From positions 434,001-498,000 of the forward strand of contig NIVC01000084.1 in assembly GCA_002269645.1 (NCBI GenBank): a stretch of 64,000 nucleotides of DNA, read 5' to 3'. The stretch comes from Macrostomum lignano. Taxonomy: Eukaryota. The stretch's first letter is position 1; each line of letters begins with the position of its first letter. Below the pieces are notes generated by a model. The model saw only the letters and a program-made list of their open reading frames with translations. It was not told the origin of the DNA and did no database searches. This document shows positions 1 to 24,280 of this stretch, in pieces. A program made the position numbers and the translations under genes.

Positions 1-245
1 CATAATTATCTGAATCATAACACCTGGATCATTACACCTGGATTATAACACCTGGATTATAACACCTGGATTATAACACCTGGATCATAACACCTGGATT
101 ATAACACCTGGATTATAACACCTGGATTATAACACCTGGATCGTACCACCTGGATCATAACACCCGGATCATAACACCCGGATTAGAACACCTGGATCAT
201 AACACCTGGACCATAATACCTGAATCATAACACCTGGATCATAAA
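1..245. repeat. 13-bp intronic minisatellite (ataacacctggat); also ~2150-2490 and ~4396-4735
   Basis: Direct reading of tandem units. Confidence 0.95.
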
Positions 246-299
246 ACTTAAACCATAACACCCCTTAGACCGCCCTTCGCCCCTCCCCGACATCCGCAG

Positions 300-3200
300 G
301 TTCCGCTCCATCACGAGCGCCTACTACCGAGGCTGCGCCGGCGCTCTGCTGGTCTTCGACGCCTTGAACCGCGACAGCTTCGACAGCTGCGAGCGCTGGC
401 TGCAGGAGCTGCGGGCCTCCGCGCCAGAGTCCACGCCCGTGGCTCTGGTGGCCAACAAGAGCGACTCGGATGAGGCCGCCGTGACTCAGGAGGAGGCGGC
501 CGAGTTCGCCAAGTCGCACGGCGTCGAGCTGTGCTGGGGGTCAGCGCCCGCACCGGACAGAATGTCGGCCAGGCATTCAGGGGCCTGCAGAGTCGGGTGC
601 TGCAGAGCCAGAGCCAGCAATTCGGGTTGGTATTTGGCCTTCGCAACAGCATTTCATCCATTTAGCTATACATTCTCATCGTCATAGCAACACAACGTCA
701 TCCACATAGCAACACAACTTCGTCCCCATGGCAACACAATCTCAAGCACATAGCAACACGATTTCATCCCCATAGCAACACAACTTCATCCCCATAACAA
801 CGCAAATATTTTCTCTTTAAAACCGATTCCTAGTTTGGCACAGACCCAGCAGTCAAACGAATCGGCTACTTTCGCTCCGAAGGCCATCAATACGAGTAAA
901 TCTACTGAGCAGTCGAAGGAGTCTCCCATTTCGAAGCCAGCAGCAGTGGGACAGGCAAACCTGAACGATGATCGCTCTCCTGACTATGTGATAAAAAGTG
1001 AGATATAGCATCCTTGTCTTTACCATCTGACTGTTACGTGGGTGCGAAGTGAGATGGATATGCGGAGTGAGCTGGGTGCGGAGTGCGGCGGGTGTGGAGT
1101 GAGGTGGGTGTGGAGTGAGGTGGGTGTGGAGTGAGCTGGGTGCGGAGTGCGGCGGGTGTGGAGTGAGGTGGGTGTGGAGTGAGCTGGGTGCGGAGTGCGG
1201 CGGGTGTGGAGTGAGGTGGGCGCGGGGTGAGGTGGGTGCGGAGTGAGGTGGGTGCGGAGTGAGGTGGGTGCGGAGTGAGGTGGGCGTGAAGTGGGGTGTG
1301 TGTGGAGTGAGGTGGGTGTGGAGTGAGGTGGGTGTGGAGTGAGGTGGGTGTGGAGTGAGGTGGATGTGGAGTGAGCTGGGTGCGGAGTGCAGTGGGTGTG
1401 GAGTGAGGTGGGTGTGGAGTGAGCTGGGTGCGGAGTGCGGCGGTTGTGGAGTGAGGTGGGCGCGGGGTGAGGTGGGTGCGGAGTGAGGTGGGTGCGGAGT
1501 GAGGTGGGTGCGGAGTGAGGTGGGCGTGAAGTGGGGTGGGTGGAGTGAGGTGGGTGTGGAGTGAGCTGGGTGCGGAGTGCGGCGGGTGTGGAGTGAGGTG
1601 GGCGCGGGGTGAGGTGGGTGCGGAGTGAGGTGGGTGCGGAGTGAGGTGGGTGCGGAGTGAGGTGGGCGTGAAGTGGGGTGTGTGTGGAGTGAGGTGGGTG
1701 TGGAGTGAGGTGGGTGTGTAGTGAGGTGGGTGCGGAATGAGGTGAGTGCGGAGTGAGGTGGGTGCGGAGTGGAGTGAGGTTCGGAGGTGGGTGCAGAGTG
1801 AGGTGGGTGTGAGAATGCTCACAATGCCCACACCCACACGCAGCGGTGCTAATCGGAGACTCCGGCGTCGGCAAGTCCTGCCTGGTCCGCCAATTTATTG
1901 ACCAGGAATTTGACGAGAGCCTCAAGGCAACGCCCACCATCGGAGTGGACTTTCGCGTGGTGAACAGCGACATTGACGGGTCGCGAGTGAAAACTCAGAT
2001 TTGGGATACGGCAGGACAACAGAGGTGAGGTTGAAGTTGGATAGCTCGCTCTTTCCTTTATTAACTTTATTTTTGGACGAAATTGTGTTATAAAACCCAT
2101 TAGATTTACACATAAGTTACTATCATTAACTCATTAGACAGCAAGGACCTTAACACCTGGATCATAATAACTGAATCATGAATCTAGGCTCATAAACCTA
2201 TATTAAAACACCGGAATCATGACACTCAAATTATAAATCTTGGATCATAATTATCTGAATCATAACACCTGGATCATTACACCTGGATTATAACACCTGG
2301 ATTATAACACCTGGATTATAACACCTGGATCATAACACCTGGATTATAACACCTGGATTATAACACCTGGATTATAACACCTGGATCGTACCACCTGGAT
2401 CATAACACCCGGATCATAACACCCGGATTAGAACACCTGGATCATAACACCTGGACCATAATACCTGAATCATAACACCTGGATCATAAAACTTAAACCA
2501 TAACACCCCTTAGACCGCCCTTCGCCCCTCCCCGACATCCGCAGGTTCCGCTCCATCACGAGCGCCTACTACCGAGGCTGCGCCGGCGCTCTGCTGGTCT
2601 TCGACGCCTTGAACCGCGACAGCTTCGACAGCTGCGAGCGCTGGCTGCAGGAGCTGCGGGCCTCCGCGCCAGAGTCCACGCCCGTGGCTCTGGTGGCCAA
2701 CAAGAGCGACTCGGATGAGGCCGCCGTGACTCAGGAGGAGGCGGCCGAGTTCGCCAAGTCGCACGGCGTCGAGCTGTGCTGGGGGGTCAGCGCCCGCACC
2801 GGACAGAATGTCGGCCAGGCATTCAGGGGCCTGCAGAGTCGGGTGCTGCAGAGCCAGAGCCAGCAATTCGGGTTGGTATTTGGCCTTCGCAACAGCATTT
2901 CATCCATTTAGCTATACATTCTCATCGTCATAGCAACACAACGTCATCCACATAGCAACACAACTTCGTCCCCATGGCAACACAATCTCAAGCACATAGC
3001 AACACGATTTCATCCCCATAGCAACACAACTTCATCCCCATAACAACGCAAATATTTTCTCTTTAAAACCGATTCCTAGTTTGGCACAGACCCAGCAGTC
3101 AAACGAATCGGCTACTTTCGCTCCGAAGGCCATCAATACGAGTAAATCTACTGAGCAGTCGAAGGAGTCTCCCATTTCGAAGCCAGCAGCAGTGGGACAG

Positions 3201-6200
3201 GCAAACCTGAACGATGATCGCTCTCCTGACTATGTGATAAAAAGTGAGATATAGCATCCTTGTCTTTACCATCTGACTGTTACGTGGGTGCGAAGTGAGA
3301 TGGATATGCGGAGTGAGCTGGGTGCGGAGTGCGGCGGGTGTGGAGTGAGGTGGGTGTGGAGTGAGGTGGGTGTGGAGTGAGCTGGGTGCGGAGTGCGGCG
3401 GGTGTGGAGTGAGGTGGGTGTGGAGTGAGCTGGGTGCGGAGTGCGGCGGGTGTGGAGTGAGGTGGGCGCGGGGTGAGGTGGGTGCGGAGTGAGGTGGGTG
3501 CGGAGTGAGGTGGGTGCGGAGTGAGGTGGGCGTGAAGTGGGGTGTGTGTGGAGTGAGGTGGGTGTGGAGTGAGGTGGGTGTGGAGTGAGGTGGGTGTGGA
3601 GTGAGGTGGATGTGGAGTGAGCTGGGTGCGGAGTGCAGTGGGTGTGGAGTGAGGTGGGTGTGGAGTGAGCTGGGTGCGGAGTGCGGCGGTTGTGGAGTGA
3701 GGTGGGCGCGGGGTGAGGTGGGTGCGGAGTGAGGTGGGTGCGGAGTGAGGTGGGTGCGGAGTGAGGTGGGCGTGAAGTGGGGTGGGTGGAGTGAGGTGGG
3801 TGTGGAGTGAGCTGGGTGCGGAGTGCGGCGGGTGTGGAGTGAGGTGGGCGCGGGGTGAGGTGGGTGCGGAGTGAGGTGGGTGCGGAGTGAGGTGGGTGCG
3901 GAGTGAGGTGGGCGTGAAGTGGGGTGTGTGTGGAGTGAGGTGGGTGTGGAGTGAGGTGGGTGTGTAGTGAGGTGGGTGCGGAATGAGGTGAGTGCGGAGT
4001 GAGGTGGGTGCGGAGTGGAGTGAGGTTCGGAGGTGGGTGCAGAGTGAGGTGGGTGTGAGAATGCTCACAATGCCCACACCCACACGCAGCGGTGCTAATC
4101 GGAGACTCCGGCGTCGGCAAGTCCTGCCTGGTCCGCCAATTTATTGACCAGGAATTTGACGAGAGCCTCAAGGCAACGCCCACCATCGGAGTGGACTTTC
4201 GCGTGGTGAACAGCGACATTGACGGGTCGCGAGTGAAAACTCAGATTTGGGATACGGCAGGACAACAGAGGTGAGGTTGAAGTTGGATAGCTCGCTCTTT
4301 CCTTTATTAACTTTATTTTTGGACGAAATTGTGTTATAAAACCCATTAGATTTACACATAAGTTACTATCATTAACTCATTAGACAGCAAGGACCTTAAC
4401 ACCTGGATCATAATAACTGAATCATGAATCTAGGCTCATAAACCTATATTAAAACACCGGAATCATGACACTCAAATTATAAATCTTGGATCATAATTAT
4501 CTGAATCATAACACCTGGATCATTACACCTGGATTATAACACCTGGATTATAACACCTGGATTATAACACCTGGATCATAACACCTGGATTATAACACCT
4601 GGATTATAACACCTGGATTATAACACCTGGATCGTACCACCTGGATCATAACACCCGGATCATAACACCCGGATTAGAACACCTGGATCATAACACCTGG
4701 ACCATAATACCTGAATCATAACACCTGGATCATAAAACTTAAACCATAACACCCCTTAGACCGCCCTTCGCCCCTCCCCGACATCCGCAGGTTCCGCTCC
4801 ATCACGAGCGCCTACTACCGAGGCTGCGCCGGCGCTCTGCTGGTCTTCGACGCCTTGAACCGCGACAGCTTCGACAGCTGCGAGCGCTGGCTGCAGGAGC
4901 TGCGGGCCTCCGCGCCAGAGTCCACGCCCGTGGCTCTGGTGGCCAACAAGAGCGACTCGGATGAGGCCGCCGTGACTCAGGAGGAGGCGGCCGAGTTCGC
5001 CAAGTCGCACGGCGTCGAGCTGTGCTGGGGGGTCAGCGCCCGCACCGGACACAATGTCGGCCAGGCTTTCAGGGGCCTGCAGAGTCGCTGCCTCGCCCAG
5101 ATGAAGCTTCAGAAGGCGGAGACAGCGCCGAAGGCGGCCAACGCGTCAATACGGATAGCAGAGATTGACAGCATGCTGGCGAGTGTCAAAGATATGAGTT
5201 CGTCGAATTTCGATTCGAAAGTTTTGTCCAGATTCACCGTTGACAGTCAGCGGCAAAGCGCGCCGCCAGGTGCCAGCGTGGAGGAGCTGCCGTTGATTGA
5301 GTCCCAGACTGCGTCTGTGCCCGACAGGCCTGCTGTGCTCGTCAATGGTGATCTTGGGCGATTTTTAGAGCTTTTAAATAAGACACAAATGGCGCCAAAC
5401 TAGACACAAATGGCGCCAAACTAGACACTAAAGGCGTCAACCTAGACACAAATGGCGCCAAACTGAACACAAATGGCGCCAAACAACTTTATGTTTACCA
5501 ATGATTAAACCGATCAACTCCCGCAGTAATCGTTGCTGGGAACGCTGGCGTTGGCAAGTCCAGCCTTCTGGCTCGCTTTGTAGGCGGCCAATTCAACGAA
5601 TCGTATGCGCCGACAGTGGCCGCGAGTCTGCAGAGCCGACTGGTCAAGGTTGACGGGGTGCCGGTCCAATGCCAGATTTGGGACACTGCCGGTCAGGAGA
5701 GGTGAGGAGATTTTGACGTTCGCACGGTGGTGCGCGAAGGGATGTGTGGAGTGAGGTGGGCGCGGGGAGTGAGGTGGGTGCGGGGAGTGAGGCGGGTGCG
5801 GAGAGTGGGTGGGTGCAGGGAGTGAGGTGGGCGCAGGGAGTGAGGTGGGTGCAGGAAGTGAGGTGGGCGCAGGGAGTGAGGTAGGTGCAGGGAGTGAGGC
5901 GGGTGCGGAGAGTGGGTGGGTGCAGGGAGTGAGATGGGAGCATGGAGTGAGGTGGGCGCAGGGAGTGAGGTAGGTGCAGGGAGTGAGGTGGGTGCAGAGT
6001 GAGGTGGGTGCAGGAAGTGAGGTAGGTGCAGGGAGTGAGGTGGGTGCAGGGAGTGAGGTAGGTGCTAACAAAGTCCACCGCCATTACTCCCAGCCATCGC
6101 AGCAACTCGGAGGGCTACTACAGCGGCTGCCAATGCGCTATGCTGGTCTATGACGTCACTGACGCGGACAGCCTCCGCGACTGCGAGGCCTGGCTGCAGC

Positions 6201-6706
6201 GACTGCGCCCGGCACAGGACGGCGACAGCGTCGGACTACCGGCCGACGCCCCCATCGCTCTGATCGGAAACAAGCTTGACCGCCGCGAGCTCCCTACGCC
6301 CTCCGGAGCTCAGTCCGGCCTGGCGCTGGCTCGGCGCCACGGCCTGGTTTGGCGCGAAGCAACGGCGCTAGACTCGGAGAGCGCCAGCGAAGCGTTCCTG
6401 TGCCTGCTGCGCGCCGTTCTACAGACCATGCATTCGCCAGAACAACTTCGGAATGCGGATTCTAAGAAACGCAAAGGCGAAAAAAACGCTAGCAGACGAA
6501 AGCGAAAGTCGAAGCAGAAGGCAAGAAACAGCGGTCGCGATGCCGCCGCCAAAGTTTCCGCCGTGAGGTTTGGCGGCACGGCGACGCTGACGGAATTTCC
6601 AGGCGTCGGAGACAACGCGGTGACCACCCAAGATGACGACAATGAGGCTGCCTGGACGTCGGACTCCTCGCTAAGCAGCAGCAGCTCGGCCGAGTCAGCT
6701 GAGTAA
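300..6706 (+). CDS. Multi-domain (tandem) Rab-like small GTPase protein, spliced, 5' end outside window
   Basis: Phase-compatible GT-AG exons: 300-629, 844-997, 1844-2024, 2545-2875, 3090-3243, 4090-4270, 4791-5347, 5527-5701, 6094-6706. Junctions rebuild Rab motifs: DYVIK|[20 protein letters not shown]|[21 protein letters not shown]. Last domain: VLVN|[25 protein letters not shown]. The first exon copy has 5 G instead of 6 at ~536-540 (frameshift). Confidence 0.8.
1060..1812. repeat. G-rich ~15-bp intronic minisatellite (ggagtgaggtgggtg); second copy ~3306-4058
   Basis: Direct reading; generates the His/Pro/Thr-rich ORFs on the minus strand. Confidence 0.95.
5381..5485. repeat. 21-bp intronic repeat (agacacaaatggcgccaaact), 4-5 copies
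   Basis: Direct reading; lies in the intron 5348-5526. Confidence 0.9.
5745..6065. repeat. G-rich ~18-bp intronic minisatellite (gggagtgaggtgggtgca)
   Basis: Direct reading. Confidence 0.9.
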
Positions 6707-6964: not shown

Positions 6965-7205
6965 ACTATGGGATTCCCCTTTGCAAAACTAAAATAGCTA
7001 TGGGATTCCCCTTTGCAAAACTAAAATAGCTATGGGATTCCCCTTTGCAAAACTAAAATAGCTATGGGATTCCCCTTTGCAAAACTAAAATAGCTATGGG
7101 ATTACCCTTTGCAAAACTAAAAATAGTTACGGGATTCCCCATTGTAAAACTTAAATCAGCTACGGGATCCTATGTTAAAACTATAAATAAATAAGGGATT
7201 CCCCT
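6965..7205. repeat. ~32-bp minisatellite (tgggattcccctttgcaaaactaaaatagcta), degenerate copies from ~6810
   Basis: Direct reading. Confidence 0.9.
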
Positions 7206-7764
7206 TTTGTAAATCCAAAACAACTACGGGAAACTTGTTGACAATAATTTTCTAGTTTAATCAGTGATTGCATGATACTGTTTATGCTTTATTAAATCTA
7301 GCTAGTAATAATCAATTATGATTCCATTAAGATGTTAATGCCTAAAGTAGATTTTTGTTGAGTTTTTAACTTTCTGCTCTCTGTAGTCTAATAGGTTGTT
7401 TTTTATCAAGCCGCTTCTTTTTCAAGTTGAACAAAAAATTGATATGTTGAATCGTATCTGAGTACTTACTAGACTTTTGATTAAAATATTAGTAGTAAAA
7501 TGCGCTTTTCTTTAATTTTTTCGCGAACATATAATAATAAATACTATTTTTATACATTACGAAAGAGCAAACTGCCTGTTGCAGTACTTTGGACTGAATA
7601 ACTTTTATTTGAACCATGTTAAAACGATTATAAACATTCATGGAATAATACACTGCCAAATTGTAAGACTGCTGCGACTTCAAATGGTTTAAGACTGAAT
7701 ATAAATTACTGGGATAAATATAAAGTACTGGAATATAAAACATTGTTACTGTGAACTGGATATT

Positions 7765-8400
7765 GGGTGAGATTGAGAGATGGATGAAATTGAGAGATGG
7801 ATGAGATTGAGAGATGGGTGAGATTGAGAGATAGGTGAGATTGAGAGATGGGTGAGATTGGGAGATAGGTGAGATTGAGAGATGGGTGAGATTGGGAGAT
7901 AGGTGAGATTGAGAGATAGGTGAGATTGAGAGATGGGTGAGATTGGGAGATAGGTGAGATTGAGAGATGGGTGAGATTGGGAGATAGGTGAGATTGAGAG
8001 ATAGGTGAGATTGAGAGATGGGTGAGATTGGGAGATAGGTGAGATTGAGAGATGGGTGAGATTGGGAGATAGGTGAGATTGAGAGATGGGTGAGATTGGG
8101 AGATAGGTGAGATTGAGAGATAGGTGAGATTGAGAGATGGGTGAGATTGGGAGATAGGTGAGATTGAGAGATGGGTGAGATTAAGAGACGGGGGAGTTTG
8201 GGAGATGGGGGAGATTGACAGATGGGTGAGATTGGGAGATGGGGGAGATTGACAGATGGGTGAGATTAAGAGACGGGGGAGTTTGGGAGATGGGGGAGAT
8301 TGACAGATGGGTGAGATTGACAGATGGGTGAGATTAAGAGACGGGGATATTGATTGGTGGGATTGAGATTGGTGAAATTAAGAGGGGGGTGAGATTAGGA
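7765..8400. repeat. ~17-bp purine-rich minisatellite (ggtgagattgagagat)
   Basis: Direct reading. Confidence 0.9.
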
Positions 8401-8761: not shown

Positions 8762-9740
8762 TTTGATTGGCTTTATTGTCTATGGCCGAGTGCGGTTCTG
8801 TGGCAGTGGCTTTGATTGGTTTTATTGTCTATGGCCAAGTGCGGTTCTGTGGCAGTGTGGCTTTGATCGGCTTTATTGTCTATGGCCGAGTGCAGTTCTG
8901 TGGCAGTGTGGCTTTGATCGGCTTTATTGTCTATGGCCGAGTGCAGTTGTGTGGCAGTGGCTTTGATTGGCTTTATTGTCTATGGCCAAGTGCGGTTCTG
9001 TGGCAGTGGCTTTGATTGGCTTAATTGTCTATGGCCGAGTGCAGTTCTGTGGCAGTGGCTTTGATTGGCTTTATTGTCTATGGCCAAGTGCGGTTCTGTG
9101 GCAGTGGCTTTGATAGGCTTTATTGTCTATGGCCGAGTGCAGTTCTGTGGCAGTGGCTTTGATTGGCTTTATTGTCTATGGCCGAGTGCAGTTCTGTGGC
9201 AGTGTGGCTTTGATCGGCTTTATTGTCTATGGCCGAGTGCAGTTGTGTGGCAGTGGCTTTGATTGGCTTTATTGTCTATGGCCAAGTGCGGTTCTGTGGC
9301 AGTGGCTTTGATTGGCTTAATTGTCTATGGCCGAGTGCAGTTCTGTGGCAGTGTGGCTTTGATCGGCTTTATTGTCTATGGCCGAGTGCAGTTCTGTGGC
9401 AGTGTGGCTTTGATCGGCTTTATTGTCTATGGCCGAGTGCAGTTGTGTGGCAGTGGCTTTGATTGGCTTTACTGTCTATGGCCGAGTACAGATCTGTGGC
9501 AGTGGCTTTGATTGGCTTTATTGTCTATGGCCGAGTGCAGTTCTGTGGCAGTGGCTTTGATTGGCTTTATTGTCTATGGCCGAGTGCAGTTCTGTGGCAG
9601 TGGCTTTGATTGGCTTTATTGTCTATGGCCGAGTGCAGTTCTGTGGCAGTGGCTTTGATTGGCTTTATTGTCTATGGCCGAGTGCAGTTCTGTGGCAGTG
9701 GCTTTGATTGGCTTTGTTGTCTATGGCCGAGTGCAGTTCT
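8762..9740. repeat. ~49-bp minisatellite just downstream of the beta-TrCP stop
   Basis: Unit tttgattggctttattgtctatggccgagtgcagttctgtggcagtggc, about 20 copies. Confidence 0.95.
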
Positions 9741-9781: not shown

Positions 9782-12700
9782 TCAATCATCCTCATCTCCG
9801 GCCTCGTTGTCTTCGGCGTCTCCACCGCCGCCTTCATCCTCGGCGTCGGCATCGGCAAAGTGCAGCACAACAGCCTCATCAACCTCTTCATCGGCGGCTT
9901 CCTTAATGCCCCCCTGATCCCCATCGTCGCCAAGGAAATCCCACACTAAGATAGTATCGTCGTGGGACGATGAAACGATCTGGAATTCGTCGAATTGCAA
10001 GCGGAACACCCTGCCAGAGTGTTCGCTGAGTGTGACGATGCACAGCGCGTCGGCCGACGATCTGGGGTCAAGGGCGGCCTGCAGGTCCCACACTTTGATC
10101 TTGCCGTCGTAGGCGCCGGACACAATTCGTTTGGAGTCGAAACGGATGCAGCGGACCAGCTCTTCGTGCCCTGCAGGGGGATTAAGATAATAACTATCGT
10201 ATCGGGAGGTGCCTTTGATGTTCACCGAAAAAAGTTCAATGAAAGTCGGGAGGTGCCTTTGATGTTCACCGAAAAAGGTTCAATGAAAGTCGGGAGGTGC
10301 CTTTGATGTTTAACGAAAAAGGTTCAATGAAAGTCGGGAGGTGCCTTTGATGTTTACCGAAAAAGGTTCAATGAAAGTCGGGAGGTGCCTTTGATGTTCA
10401 CCGAAAAAGGTTCAATGAAAGTCGGGAGGTGCCTTTGATGTTTAACGAAAAAGGTTCAATGAAAGTCGGGAGGTGCCTTTGATGTTTACCGACGGGCAAT
10501 CGGAGTTCACCGACAGGGTTCAATGAAAGACACACCTTTGATGTTTATCGAAAGGGTTCAATAAAAGTCTGAAGGTGCCTTTGAATTTTGCCGAAAAAGA
10601 TTTAAGGAGAGTCGGGGTGCCTGGTGAAGGTTGAATAAAAGTCGGGCCTTTGATGTTTGCCGAAAAGGGTTCAATGAAAGGCGGGCCTTTGATGCTTACC
10701 GATAAGGGTTCAATGAAAGGCGGGCCTTTGATGCTTACCGATAAGGGTTCAATGAAAGGTTGGGGCGGCGCCTTTGAAGTCTGAAGTGAATCTACAGCTT
10801 CAAACTTACCATTGAGCACTCGCAGACAGATTCCGCTCTCGATATCCCACAGTCTGATAGAATTATCAGACGAGCCGCTAACAACCAGATTATCGCGATA
10901 CTGCAAACAGGCGATGCCGCGCTTGTGACCGCTCAGGGTGCGCACAAACTCGCAGCTGGCAGTGTGCCAAACTTTAATAGTCCTATCGCCGGAAGCTGAC
11001 ACAATGTAGCGCGAATCGAAATCTACAACATTCACGGCGGCTCGGTGGCCTACTAGAACTCGTCTAAGCGCGATGTCGCTAGGCGAGTGCATGTCCCACA
11101 CGGCTATGGATCTGTCCTTGGAGCACGTGACCATCAGGCCGTCGCAGAAGCGCAGATGGAGCACGGCTTCGCAATGATGATACAGTGTGTTCAACGGTTG
11201 GCCAGTGCGCACGTCCCAGACTCGCACTGTGCTGTCAGAGGAGCCGCTAATTATTATGTCATCGTCGTACTGGAGGCACAGTACGGAGCCCATGTGGCTG
11301 GATAGCACCTGGTTTGTGTGATAATTGTATGATAGGGATATCGGTAAGGGAGATGCATTCACTAATCCCATAGCTTGATATTGATCCCAATTGATAATCC
11401 CTTCGAGTTATTAATAATCCCAATTGATAATCCCCTCGAGTGAGTAATAATCCCAATTGATAATACCCTCTTGTGATTAATAATCCCAATTGATAATCCT
11501 CTCTTGTGCTTTATAATCCCAATTGATAATCCTCTCTTGTGCTTTATAATCCCAATTGATAATCCTCTCTTGTGCTTTATAATCCCAATTGATAATCCTC
11601 TCTTGTGCTTTATAATCCCAATTGGTAATCCCCTCGTGTGGTTAATAATCCCAATCGATAATCCCCTCGAATGATAAAAAATCCCAATCGATAATCTCTT
11701 TGAGCAATTAATAACCTAAATCGATACTCACCTACGATCATTTATGATTTGAATCCTCTACACAAGGATTAATTCTATATTATTATCCCCATCCCGAATC
11801 CCTTACCTTAGTACACTCCAGAGATTTACGATCCCACACTTTGATGGTGTTATCCCTTAGGCCGCTAATAATCTTGTCCTCGTCGTACTGCAGGCAATAA
11901 ACTCCTTTGGAAGATTCGCTTCGGCATTGAATTCGGCGCAATTTAAAATTGCCCTTGGCCCAGTTGCTCTCGATTCGCCTGATGTCGCTGAGAATCTTCG
12001 GGTACAGCTGCCTGTAGTGGCTGTCTGGACTGCCGGCGTCGCCCTCCGCTCCGTCTCGCTGCGGCCGGCGCAGGTCTCGCAGCCAGCCTCTGCGGACGGC
12101 CAGCCCGCGCCACAGATTGCTTCTGCGCACCTGCAAGCAATTTTTAAAGTACAGTGCGGTTTGTCTGGCTTCCCCAGCAACTGGGGATCTGGGAGGCTGG
12201 CCCAGCAACTGACACTCTGGGAGGCTGGCCCAGCAACTGACACTCTGGGAGGCTGGCCCACCAACTGAGGATCTGGGAGGCTGGTCCAGCAACTGGGGAT
12301 TTGAGAGGGTGGCCCAGCAACTGAGGATTTGGGAGGCTGGCCCAGCAACTGACACTCTGAGAGGCTGGCTTAGCAACTGAGGATCTGGGAGGCTGGCCCA
12401 GTAACTGACACTCTGGGAGGCTGGCCCAGCAACTGAGGATCTGGGAGGCTGGCCCAGCAACTGAGGATCTGGGAGTCTGGCCCAGCAACTGAGGATCTTG
12501 GAGGCTGGCCCAGTAACTGACACTCTGGGAGTCTGGCCCAGCAACTGAGGATCTTGGAGGCTGGCCCAGCAACTGAACAGTTGCTAACCAAATATTTGAG
12601 TCCCCCAAAGCCAATCCTCTCAACGCTCACCTGCGACTCAATCAGCTTACGCCACAGCAGGCCCTCAGATACAACCCGTCGCCACTCGCTGCACACCATC

Positions 12701-12983
12701 TCAGCAGAGGCGAGAGATTTTGCATCCAAACACGCCAAGATTCGCTCAGCCAAATGATCCAAGCCACATGTTGGCAGTACACTGATAAAGTCTCGCTGCA
12801 GCATGGGAGCTAAGTAGTCCTGCACTTGGCCATGCTGATAATGCGACATACTGCCCAGTAACTGTTCAACAAAGTTCACCTGTTCCATTTCTGACCAAGT
12901 GGAGAATTGCTCTAAGCAGACTGACTGCTCAGACAGAAATTGTTCAGACAGTGACATGATGTACTTGACTTTTTCTGATACAG
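9782..12983 (-). CDS. BTRC: beta-TrCP (F-box/WD40 protein, FBXW1/FBXW11/slimb orthologue)
   Basis: Exons 12983-12631, 12130-11807, 11308-10810, 10170-9782 with compatible phases. D domain ([21 protein letters not shown]), F-box ([23 protein letters not shown]) and seven WD40 repeats ([27 protein letters not shown] ... [29 protein letters not shown]). The start may be ATG 12957 or an unidentified upstream exon. Confidence 0.93.
10205..12580. repeat. Three different minisatellites, one per beta-TrCP intron: 44 bp (~10205-10760), 33 bp (~11375-11720), 28 bp (~12165-12580)
   Basis: Units gatgttcaccgaaaaaggttcaatgaaagtcgggaggtgccttt, ataatcccaattgataatcctctcttgtgcttt, ggaggctggcccagcaactgacactctg. 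Confidence 0.92.
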
Positions 12984-16449: not shown

Positions 16450-22338
<5,889 letters not shown>

Positions 22339-22375
22339 TGTTTGCTAGAAGGAAGGGGTCACGTTACTTAATTAG

Positions 22376-24280
22376 TGAGAGGCAGATTCAAGGACTGATG
22401 TAAGAGCGGAGAGGCAGATTCAGAGACTGAGGTGACAGCGGAGAGGCAGATTCAGAGACTGAGGGAGAGCGGAGAGGCAGATTCAGAGACTGAGGTGAGA
22501 GCGGAGAGGCAGATTCAGAGACTGAGGTAAGAGCGGAGAGGCAGATTCAGAGACTGAGGGAGAGCGGAGAGGCAGATTCAGAGACTGAGGTGAGAGCGGA
22601 GAGGCAGATTCAGAGACTGAGGTAAGAGCGGAGAGGCAGATTCAGAGACTGAGGTGACAGCGGAGAGGCAGATTCAGAGACTGAGGGAGAGCGGAGAGGC
22701 AGATTCAGAGACTGAGGTAAGAGCGGAGAGGCAGATTCAGAGACTGAGGTGACAGCGGAGAGGCAGATTCAGAGACTGAGGTAAGAGCGGAGAGGCAGAT
22801 TCAGAGACTGAGGTGAGAGCGGAGAGGCAGATTCAAGGACTGAGGAGAGAGCGGAGAGGCAGATTCAAGGACTGAGGTGAGAGCGGAGAGGCAGATTCAA
22901 GGACTGAGGTAAGAGCGGAGAGGCAGATTCAAGGACTGAGTTGACAGCGGAGAGGCAGATTCAGAGACTGAGATGAGAGCGGAGAGGCAGATTCAGTGAC
23001 TGAGGTGAGAGCGGAAAGGCAGATTCGGAGACTGAGGTGAGAGCGGAGAGGCAGATTCAAGGACTGAGGTGAGAGCGGAGAGGCAGATTCAAGGACTGAG
23101 GTGAGAGCGGAGAGGCAGATTCAGAGACTTAGGTGACAGCGGAGAGGCAGATTCAGAGACTGAGGTGAGAGCGGAGAGGCAGATTCAGGGACTGAGGTGA
23201 GAGCGGAGAGGCAGATTCGGAGACTGAGGTAAGAGCGGAGAGGCAGATTCAGAGACTGAGGGAGAGCGGAGAGGCAGATTCAGAGACTGAGGTGAGAGCG
23301 GAGAGGCAGATTCAGAGACTGAGGTAAGAGCGGAGAGGCAGATTCAGAGACTGAGGTGACAGCGGAGAGGCAGATTCAGAGACTGAGGTAAGAGCGGAGA
23401 GGCAGATTCAGAGACTGAGGTAAGAGCGGAGAGGCAGATTCAGAGACTGAGGTAAGAGCGGAGAGGCAGATTCAGAGACTGAGGTAAGAGCGGAGAGGCA
23501 GATTCAGAGACTGAGGTGAGAGCGGAGAGGCAGATTCAAGGACTGAGGAGAGAGCGGAGAGGCAGATTCAAGGACTGAGGTGAGAGCGGAGAGGCAGATT
23601 CAAGGACTGAGGTGAGAGCGGAGAGGCAGATTCAAGGACTGAGTTGACAGCGGAGAGGCAGATTCAGAGACTGAGATGAGAGCGGAGAGGCAGATTCAGT
23701 GACTGAGGTGAGAGCGGAGAGGCAGATTCAAGGACTGAGGTGAGAGCGGAAAGGCAGATTCAAGGACTGAGGTGAGAGCGGAGAGGCAGATTCAAGGACT
23801 GAGTTGACAGCGGAGAGGCAGATTCAGAGACTGAGATGAGAGCGGAGAGGCAGATTCAGTGACTGAGGTGAGAGCGGAAAGGCAGATTCGGAGACTGAGG
23901 TGAGAGCGGAGAGGCAGATTCAAGGACTGAGGTGAGAGCGGAGAGGCAGATTCAAGGACTGAGGTGAGAGCGGAGAGGCAGATTCAGAGACTTAGGTGAC
24001 AGCGGAGAGGCAGATTCAGAGACTTAGGTGACAGCGGAGAGGCAGATTCAGGGACTGAGGTGAGAGCGGAGAGGCAGATTCGGAGACTGAGGGGAGAGCG
24101 GAGAGGCAGATTCGGAGACTGAGGTGAGAGCGGAGAGGCAGATTCAGGGACTGAGGTGAGAGCGGAGAGGCAGATTCGGAGACTGAGGTGAGAGCGGAGA
24201 GGCAGATTCAAGGACTGAGGTAAGAGCCGAGAGGCAGATTCAAGGACTGAGGTGAGAGCGGAGAGGCAGATTCAGTGACA
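22376..24280. repeat. ~32-bp satellite (gagcggagaggcagattcagagactgaggtga), ~1.9 kb, in the putative SLC1 5'UTR intron
   Basis: Direct reading. Confidence 0.95.

Follow-up and report, generated by a model that had tools for sequence, protein, structure and literature searches.

The window analysed here is a 64,000-nucleotide stretch of Macrostomum lignano contig NIVC01000084.1. Its first 6.7 kb are eukaryotic in character, with GC-rich exons alternating with introns, and positions 1-6706 probably constitute the 3' part of one large gene comprised of a CARD, a helical region, a chain of Rab-like modules and a tail that carries no lipid anchor. When the window is taken together with 4.9 kb of its 5' flank (locus L001, identical to the window over the shared sequence), 18 exons join at GT-AG sites and, once a single G is restored, give one open reading frame (ORF) of ~1500 residues with six Rab-like modules, named D0 to D5. 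The assignment of these exons to one multi-Rab gene is supported at the level of sequence, most strongly by conservation in a second genomic copy (locus L002, contig NIVC01003072.1). Chance is excluded, because exon lengths, splice sites and frame are all preserved in that copy.

Exon structure of the chain

Exons were delimited by three-frame translation combined with a splice-site search, and all borders are canonical GT-AG. Each module is built from three exon pieces, namely a linker exon supplying the first strand (DYxIK), a 181-nt exon running from G1 to G3 (the N-half) and a C-half exon supplying the rest. The N-half exons are 181 nt long in D0-D4 (5/5) and 175 nt in D5, and every one is entered in phase 1 and left in phase 2, after DTAGQ-E/Q. 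The layout within the window is as follows.

1-299, + strand: intron between the N-half exon of D2 (5' of the window) and the D2 C-half exon, with a 14-bp minisatellite at 10-262
300-629, + strand: C-half exon of Rab-like module D2 (RFRSIT...NKSD...SAR), in which the G-run at 536-540 is 1 bp short
844-997, + strand: linker exon (TQQSNES...SPDYVIK), whose final residues start the next Ras-domain match
1844-2024, + strand: N-half exon of D3, G1 to G3 (GDSGVGKS ... DTAGQQ), 181 nt, phase 1 in and phase 2 out
2545-2875, + strand: C-half exon of D3, a hybrid (D4-like 5' part, D1-like from position 262)
3090-3243, + strand: linker exon, second copy
4090-4270, + strand: N-half exon of D4
4791-5347, + strand: C-half exon of D4 and an 82-residue second linker with no intron between them, leaving the tandem unit at 5052
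5527-5701, + strand: N-half exon of the divergent terminal module D5 (GNAGVGKS ... DTAGQE)
6094-6706, + strand: C-half exon of D5 (NKLD, TAL), 86-residue tail and TAA stop at 6704-6706
2545-4790, + strand: one full 2246-bp tandem unit (C-half exon, intron, linker exon, intron, N-half exon, intron)
300-2544, + strand: preceding tandem unit, with an earlier unit upstream of the window

Each intron contains its own minisatellite (window 10-262, 676-805, 1038-1809, 2151-2507, 5381-5484 and 5748-6065), and further arrays lie just 3' of the gene (6966-7231, 7764-8353 and 8762-9000), with unit sizes over both regions of 14, 22, 16, 21, 18, 32, 17/34 and ~50 bp.

Splicing of exons 2545 to 6706 gives an open 670-residue ORF, in which the Pfam Ras scan proposed by the first-pass annotation of this DNA found three Ras stretches (PF00071, E = 2.7e-109). 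That annotation had described the C-half of one domain, two complete type-1 domains and a divergent terminal domain, and this inventory was recovered as + strand GT-AG exons, the two complete domains being identical. Its further claim of at least four domains in one ORF holds insofar as the exons join by splicing, but the assembled frame is broken at 536-540 and the unbroken ORF of the window contains the two complete identical domains and the terminal one. Extension upstream raised the domain count of L001 to six, more than was visible to the first-pass annotation, and the second copy has four. The 5' flank contains one more near-identical tandem unit and, farther 5', two diverged Rab-like N-half exons, a C-half exon, two more linker exons and a non-Rab exon.

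The first-pass view of these sequences as internal exons of one gene, and not as a row of single-domain genes, is sustained by four observations: no in-frame ATG is found in the open stretch just upstream of any exon (0/18), the Pfam Ras match of each module starts in the preceding linker exon (residue 162 being the final codon of the linker exon), no module has a prenylation Cys after it, and the second copy is conserved. The linker exons end in DYVIK, DYQIK or QRVIK, which corresponds to the YDYLFK strand ahead of the P-loop of an ordinary Rab. Met is absent from the type-1 N-half exon. When the frame is followed beyond a donor, a stop is reached after 1-27 codons in every case, and the stops at 2911 and 5403 lie where they had been pointed out previously. 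A set of separate single-domain Rab genes was considered and rejected on the same count of upstream ATG codons.

An alternative linker splice is also in frame (donor after 2871, GG/gttggt; acceptor before 3080, cctag/T) and adds the residues AQ. It is weakly disfavoured, as the two genomic copies differ at 2 of the 10 bases that it adds.

A second genomic copy

The second locus was found through an exhaustive phmmer search that led to PAA53536.1 (BOX15_Mlig018981g1, P0166), a 1063-residue "CARD domain-containing protein" whose identity to the type-1 module is 81%. A beta-TrCP-like gene lies downstream of the chain in both L001 and L002, indicating that the two loci are syntenic. In L002 the counterparts of 12 exons are present, each of the same length as in L001 and aligned without a gap, with all 24 splice dinucleotides kept, and these exons give one ORF with four Rab-like modules. 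Comparison of the exons of the two loci revealed zero indels in 3174 nt, with synonymous (dS) and nonsynonymous (dN) divergences of 0.057 and 0.022, respectively, and a dN/dS of 0.38 (Fisher p = 8.5e-6). The introns, by comparison, differ in length in 10 of 11 cases and have gaps in most alignments. Such a pattern is the signature expected of a coding chain under purifying selection. The differences between homologous introns lie mainly in the length of the minisatellite arrays.

PAA53536.1 shares with L001 the non-Rab region and the first Rab-like module (88-96% amino acid identity per segment) and has the splice pattern predicted for L001, whereas its annotated product stops after one module and its locus holds four modules against six. 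An insertion of ~450 bp specific to L002, located in the intron that follows the first Rab-like module (L002 17704-18009), contributes 31 codons, a stop and AATAAA, and thereby creates an alternative last exon (FIHAQQ...CPPKK, stop) at which the annotated L002 transcript ends. The annotated product thus ends after one module because the insertion brings in a stop and an AATAAA signal; in L001, which is without the insertion, the equivalent acceptor opens a linker exon.

Identity of the modules, linkers and N-terminal region

Both kinds of module align along their whole length with solved Rab structures, the type-1 module with Rab1A (E = 2.6e-41) and the terminal module with Rab11A (E = 4.7e-29), and the best PDB matches are Rab1, Rab11 and Ypt31. 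The bit scores of the type-1 module against Rab1, Rab1B, Ypt31, Rab2, Rab11 and Rab14 are all 130-144, with no subfamily standing out. Motifs G1, G3, G4 and G5 are intact across the modules, with G1 of the GDSGVGKS type, G4 as NKSD or NKLD, and G5 as SAR in D0-D4 and TAL in D5, and D1 carries DTAGAE, where Ala replaces the catalytic Gln. Membership of the Rab family is judged by the RabF motifs around switch I/II described by Pereira-Leal and Seabra. The type-1 modules qualify on this basis (IGVDF, WDTAGQ, RFRSIT, YYRG and LVFDAL), while D5 keeps only WDTAGQE, YYSG and LVYDVT, with RabF1 and RabF3 degraded.

The modules are separated by polar linkers of ~35-90 residues, and 68-85% of the residues in the linkers and tail are polar or small. 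No C-terminal prenylation motif (CC, CXC or CCXX) was found, and neither the 86-residue tail nor linker 0, the D0 linker and the type-1 linker contain Cys. The tail is basic, then acidic and serine-rich, with no hydrophobic stretch.

The N-terminal region is best seen in PAA53536.1, where a CARD (PF00619) occupies residues 38-106 with a Pfam score of 36.7 bits (cut-off 23.9); the same region matches the CARD of RAIDD with E = 9e-4. The long region after the CARD gave no significant Pfam family, and residues 1-820 are predicted to be all-helical in a low-confidence, single-sequence AlphaFold model (mean predicted local distance difference test score 45). Judged from this product and from a UniProt model of the L001 locus (A0A1I8H0N8, see below), a CARD and ~750 helical residues probably precede the chain in L001 as well. 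The protein is more than the beads on a string of the earlier description, as the annotated product of the second copy begins with these additional regions. Within the Pfam results there is no COR domain (Roc, PF08477, merely overlaps the Ras stretches), no EF-hand family and neither an AIG1 nor an IRG-type G domain, and the protein showed no transmembrane domain either. No NACHT or NB-ARC match passes on its own; short, P-loop-limited matches fall on the Rab G1 motifs (e.g. NACHT 587-607), and the whole-protein NACHT/NB-ARC scores are sums over the repeated P-loops.

Tandem units and history of the array

Positions 1-5051 of the window consist of 2.25 copies of a 2246-bp tandem unit, a repeat on which the first-pass annotation was silent, as it was on the frameshift at 536-540. 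The sole difference between copy A of the unit (1-2245) and copy B (2246-4491) is one G in a homopolymer, and copies B and C are identical up to 5051, where they diverge. The run in question is G5 at 536-540 and G6 at 2781-2786 and 5027-5032. The unit 5' of the window (unit 0) differs from unit A by four substitutions, all in the 5' C-half segment, and by two homopolymer lengths (C3/C4 in an intron, L001 ~3380, and G5/G6 in an exon). Since units differ by indels only in the length of homopolymers, the most likely cause of the frameshift at 536-540 is an error of the PacBio consensus in a homopolymer, left in place because polishing fails within a repeat. A real lesion at this position was considered and set aside, both length differences between units being in homopolymers.

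The two halves of the modules appear to have different histories. Among the N-halves of D0, D1 and D2, the proportion of synonymous differences (pS) is 0.69-0.77, which is saturated, and that of nonsynonymous differences (pN) is 0.21-0.28, as would be the case for old duplicates kept by purifying selection. The C-halves of D0 to D4, in contrast, are nearly identical (pS 0.01-0.13). They lie at the following positions.

L001: 1623-1943, 2955-3285, 5200-5529, 7445-7775 and 9691-10000, C-half exons
L002: 17097-17417, 18725-19055 and 21104-21410, C-half exons

At exon positions 46, 53, 199 and 201, the C1 and C4 exons are alike within each locus and unlike both of their counterparts in the other locus, indicating gene conversion after the L001/L002 split, and homogenisation of the C-half exons by this route may be ongoing. 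The GC content of the C-half exons (0.64-0.68, versus 0.46-0.56 in the N-half exons) would fit GC-biased gene conversion. In the extra units the C-half exons are hybrid, D4-like at positions 58, 66, 134 and 135 and D1-like from 262 on, which points to unequal crossing-over between C1 and C4. As the intron phases repeat, a block of C-half, linker and N-half can duplicate in frame. It appears that D2 to D4 were born very recently through unequal crossing-over between near-identical C-half exons, and the identical domains would then represent a very recent expansion and no old design.

Transcript evidence and existing gene models

The Mlig_3_7 annotation is guided by RNA-seq, with StringTie/TACO assembly and with boundaries taken from trans-splicing and poly(A) reads, and trans-splicing divides numerous transcription units of M. 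lignano (PMC5730564). In L001 this annotation contains PAA91544.1 (BOX15_Mlig023764g1), a 100% match to the terminal 344 residues of the chain, whose model starts at Met 5101, within exon 4791-5347. It confirms the splice 5347>5527, one of the junctions singled out for checking by the first-pass annotation, and also 5701>6094. In L002, PAA53536.1 confirms the order non-Rab exon, linker 0, N-half of D0 and C-half of D0, and the exit from the L002 C-half is likewise confirmed (GG/gttagt to acceptor cccacag/A). There are no annotated genes over L001 1-10000 or L002 17800-26513, a gap that could plausibly have arisen from multi-mapping of reads on identical repeats.

The locus is also represented in UniProt by A0A1I8H0N8, an automatic model of 1766 residues from the ML2 assembly, which is named "P-loop containing nucleoside triphosphate hydrolase protein" and belongs to the 90% cluster of PAA91544.1. 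It resembles the L001 chain in its six Pfam Ras stretches, its identical terminal 344 residues and its three identical type-1 N-halves. It differs from the L001 exons in that D0 is mis-spliced (the N-half is skipped and linker 0 is read in another frame), the alternative linker splice is used (GLAQTQQ), the start lies after the CARD and all G-runs are intact. The first-pass suggestion that the protein might be undescribed is thus half right, since the locus is already modelled in a database although no paper on it was found. A word-indexed protein search with the linkers and the upstream non-Rab exon returned nothing specific, A0A1I8H0N8 being hidden as a cluster member, and the same search with the 400-residue helical region also returned nothing specific, PAA53536.1 surfacing only with exhaustive phmmer. 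A search of the literature on multi- or tandem-Rab proteins, CARD-Rab proteins, Mlig023764 and Mlig018981 found nothing relevant.

Weighing of alternative explanations

A number of observations weigh against a single long chain. The middle junctions (D0>D1>D2>D3>D4) have no annotated transcript in either copy, and the RNA-guided annotation contains only the 344-residue terminal product in L001 and the one-module product in L002. At the middle junctions this leaves room for separate transcripts, the outcome that the first-pass annotation had set against its own proposal. The linkers occur in no database protein except the UniProt model. As assembled, G5 at 536-540 places the first C-half exon out of the downstream frame. 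The dN/dS values of single short exons are noisy (1.18 for the N-half exon of D0, 0.91 for the type-1 N-half exon). The CARD is seen in the L002 product only, the UniProt model of the L001 locus starting after it. The exact count of tandem units rests on one PacBio data set, ML2 and Mlig_3_7 having been built from the same reads, so that agreement between them is agreement between assemblers and not between data sets. Finally, any function of the chain, be it platform, scaffold or sensor, is purely inferred.

It is possible, though unlikely, that the multi-Rab gene is real while its identical units were over- or mis-counted by the assembler, the true gene having four or five modules. Consistent with this, the units are 99.7-100% identical with their minisatellite introns included, their homopolymer-length differences are typical of PacBio consensus error, the two assemblies share their reads and L002 is without an extra unit. 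Nevertheless, the hybrid C-half exon, D4-like in its 5' part and D1-like in its 3' part, requires at least one real unequal crossover, and the two assemblers agree on three type-1 N-half exons, both in L001 and in A0A1I8H0N8.

It is similarly doubtful that the locus yields mainly short products, i.e. a CARD-helical protein with a single Rab and, separately, a terminal single-domain protein from Met 5101, cut by spliced-leader trans-splicing or polyadenylation, with the middle modules rarely or never translated as one chain. Exactly these two products (PAA53536.1 and PAA91544.1) are present in the RNA-guided annotation, trans-splicing cuts many transcription units in this species (PMC5730564), and the regions between are devoid of annotated genes. 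The truncation in L002 stems, however, from a copy-specific insertion that is absent in L001, and multi-mapping on identical repeats would explain the annotation gap. Moreover, the frame is open from Met 5101 back to the start of its exon, the type-1 N-half exons are without Met, no in-frame ATG lies just upstream of any of the 18 exons, and the exons downstream of the first module, 3' of the L002 insertion, have a dN/dS of 0.33 and zero indels between the loci.

A decaying pseudogene array that expanded neutrally, with minisatellite-rich introns and near-identical exons favouring unequal exchange, is improbable. Decay would fit the frameshift at 536-540, the insertion that truncates the L002 product and the dN/dS near 1 in some exons, and identical units carry no information on selection. 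The frameshift, however, lies in a homopolymer that is intact in the UniProt model from the ML2 assembly, the GTP-binding motifs are intact in all modules, and the second copy retains 24/24 splice dinucleotides, an overall dN/dS of 0.38 (p = 8.5e-6) and 3174 nt of exon sequence without a single indel, while almost all introns carry them. A polyprotein precursor cleaved in its linkers into free Rab-like monomers, for which the repeated module-linker layout is the sole support, is very improbable, since the linkers have no common cleavage motif, the conserved DYxIK belongs to the Rab fold that follows, the freed monomers would be without prenylation sites and the literature searched on multi-Rab proteins yielded no precedent.

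Other features of the window

Downstream of the chain, the contig annotation places the beta-TrCP-like F-box/WD40 gene (518 residues) at window ~9782-12975 on the - strand and a sodium:dicarboxylate symporter family gene from ~16450, also on the - strand. Positions 20001-24000 show opposite skews in adjacent 2-kb bins (GC -0.20 then +0.45, AT -0.37 then +0.30), probably caused by long strand-biased simple repeats. Scans of the window for tRNA genes and Rfam families found none.

Comparison with known GTPases

Rabs are normally single-domain, lipid-anchored (C-terminally prenylated) switches. The M. lignano modules resemble canonical Rabs (Rab1, Rab11/Ypt31-32 and Rab2) in their full-length structure matches, their G1-G5 motifs and the RabF motifs of type 1, but the chain differs in having four to six domains per polypeptide and no CC/CXC motif, in its lack of clear subfamily orthology (scores for Rab1, Rab11, Ypt31 and Rab2 lie within ~10 bits of one another), in the Ala for Gln of D1 and in the degraded RabF1 and RabF3 of D5. 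More than one G domain per chain, of other families, occurs in Miro, EngA/Der and GIMAP8, while the Roco protein DAPK1 combines Roc with a death domain, and the large Rabs (Rab44/45, RASEF) combine an EF-hand and a coiled coil with a single Rab. To our knowledge, none of these proteins unites a CARD with a Rab array. Unlike Roco proteins, the M. lignano chain has no COR domain in Pfam; unlike Miro, whose two GTPase domains flank EF-hands and which ends in a membrane anchor, it has neither an EF-hand family in Pfam nor a hydrophobic stretch in its tail; and unlike GIMAP8 and tandem IRG proteins, it has no AIG1 or IRG G domains.

Predicted multi-Rab proteins are rare but turn up repeatedly. At least three Rab stretches occur in roughly a dozen of the best 150 of 1.84 billion representatives surveyed with phmmer, and multi-Rab predictions were seen in bdelloid rotifers (Rotaria, Adineta), Solemya velum, Blattella germanica, Pelomyxa, fungi and a Gammaproteobacteria metagenome-assembled genome. 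The last of these, HEV2614272.1 (2322 residues), combines four Rab-like GTPase stretches with leucine-rich repeats and an N-terminal region that is long and helical. The models from other taxa are like the M. lignano chain in having two to six Ras/Rab stretches, several with no Met or Cys at the linker junctions, and one case is an uninterrupted 569-residue ORF on a Logan contig. They differ in being 25-45% identical, of other Rab types (e.g. Rab1/8-like) and without a CARD, and are probably of independent origin. With few exceptions they are automatic, unverified models, and some two-domain ones are fused neighbouring genes (P0015, P0030). No paper on the models from other taxa was found in the literature on tandem-Rab proteins, and a survey of the ARF family describes one Rab-BTB/BACK-Arf fusion (Malawimonas) and no chain of Rab domains. 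The chain described here is unusual in architecture, real, conserved in its second copy and already in UniProt as an unnamed automatic model, but apparently never studied.

Proposed function and significance

Cycling on and off membranes in the manner of a normal Rab would be unlikely for this protein, because its GTP-binding motifs are kept whereas D1 is without the catalytic Gln and the lipid anchor is absent. More probably, the chain would act as a soluble platform, multivalent and dependent on nucleotide, that could associate with Rab partners or with itself and be coupled to CARD-CARD signalling. A more specific proposal, which we consider improbable at present, is that the CARD-coupled array of non-prenylated Rab look-alikes is an innate-immune or cell-death sensor, in which Rab-binding or Rab-modifying factors, whether endogenous or from a pathogen, would be lured by the modules as in-cis baits (integrated decoys). 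Once such a factor is engaged, or the modules cluster in a nucleotide-dependent way, CARD-CARD assembly with a caspase would follow. If so, an arms race would have left its footprint in the fast gain of modules by unequal crossing-over and in their homogenisation through gene conversion.

Four to six unanchored Rab-like domains behind a CARD would, if confirmed, represent a new use of the Rab fold and link a membrane-traffic module to death-fold signalling. Multi-Rab gene models recur across several phyla and have apparently gone unexamined, and the availability of transgenesis and RNA interference in M. lignano makes this protein experimentally tractable. The locus itself, with its hybrid exons, repeating intron phases and concerted evolution, appears to be a case of exon-block duplication caught in progress, and may serve as a model for the growth of repeat proteins.

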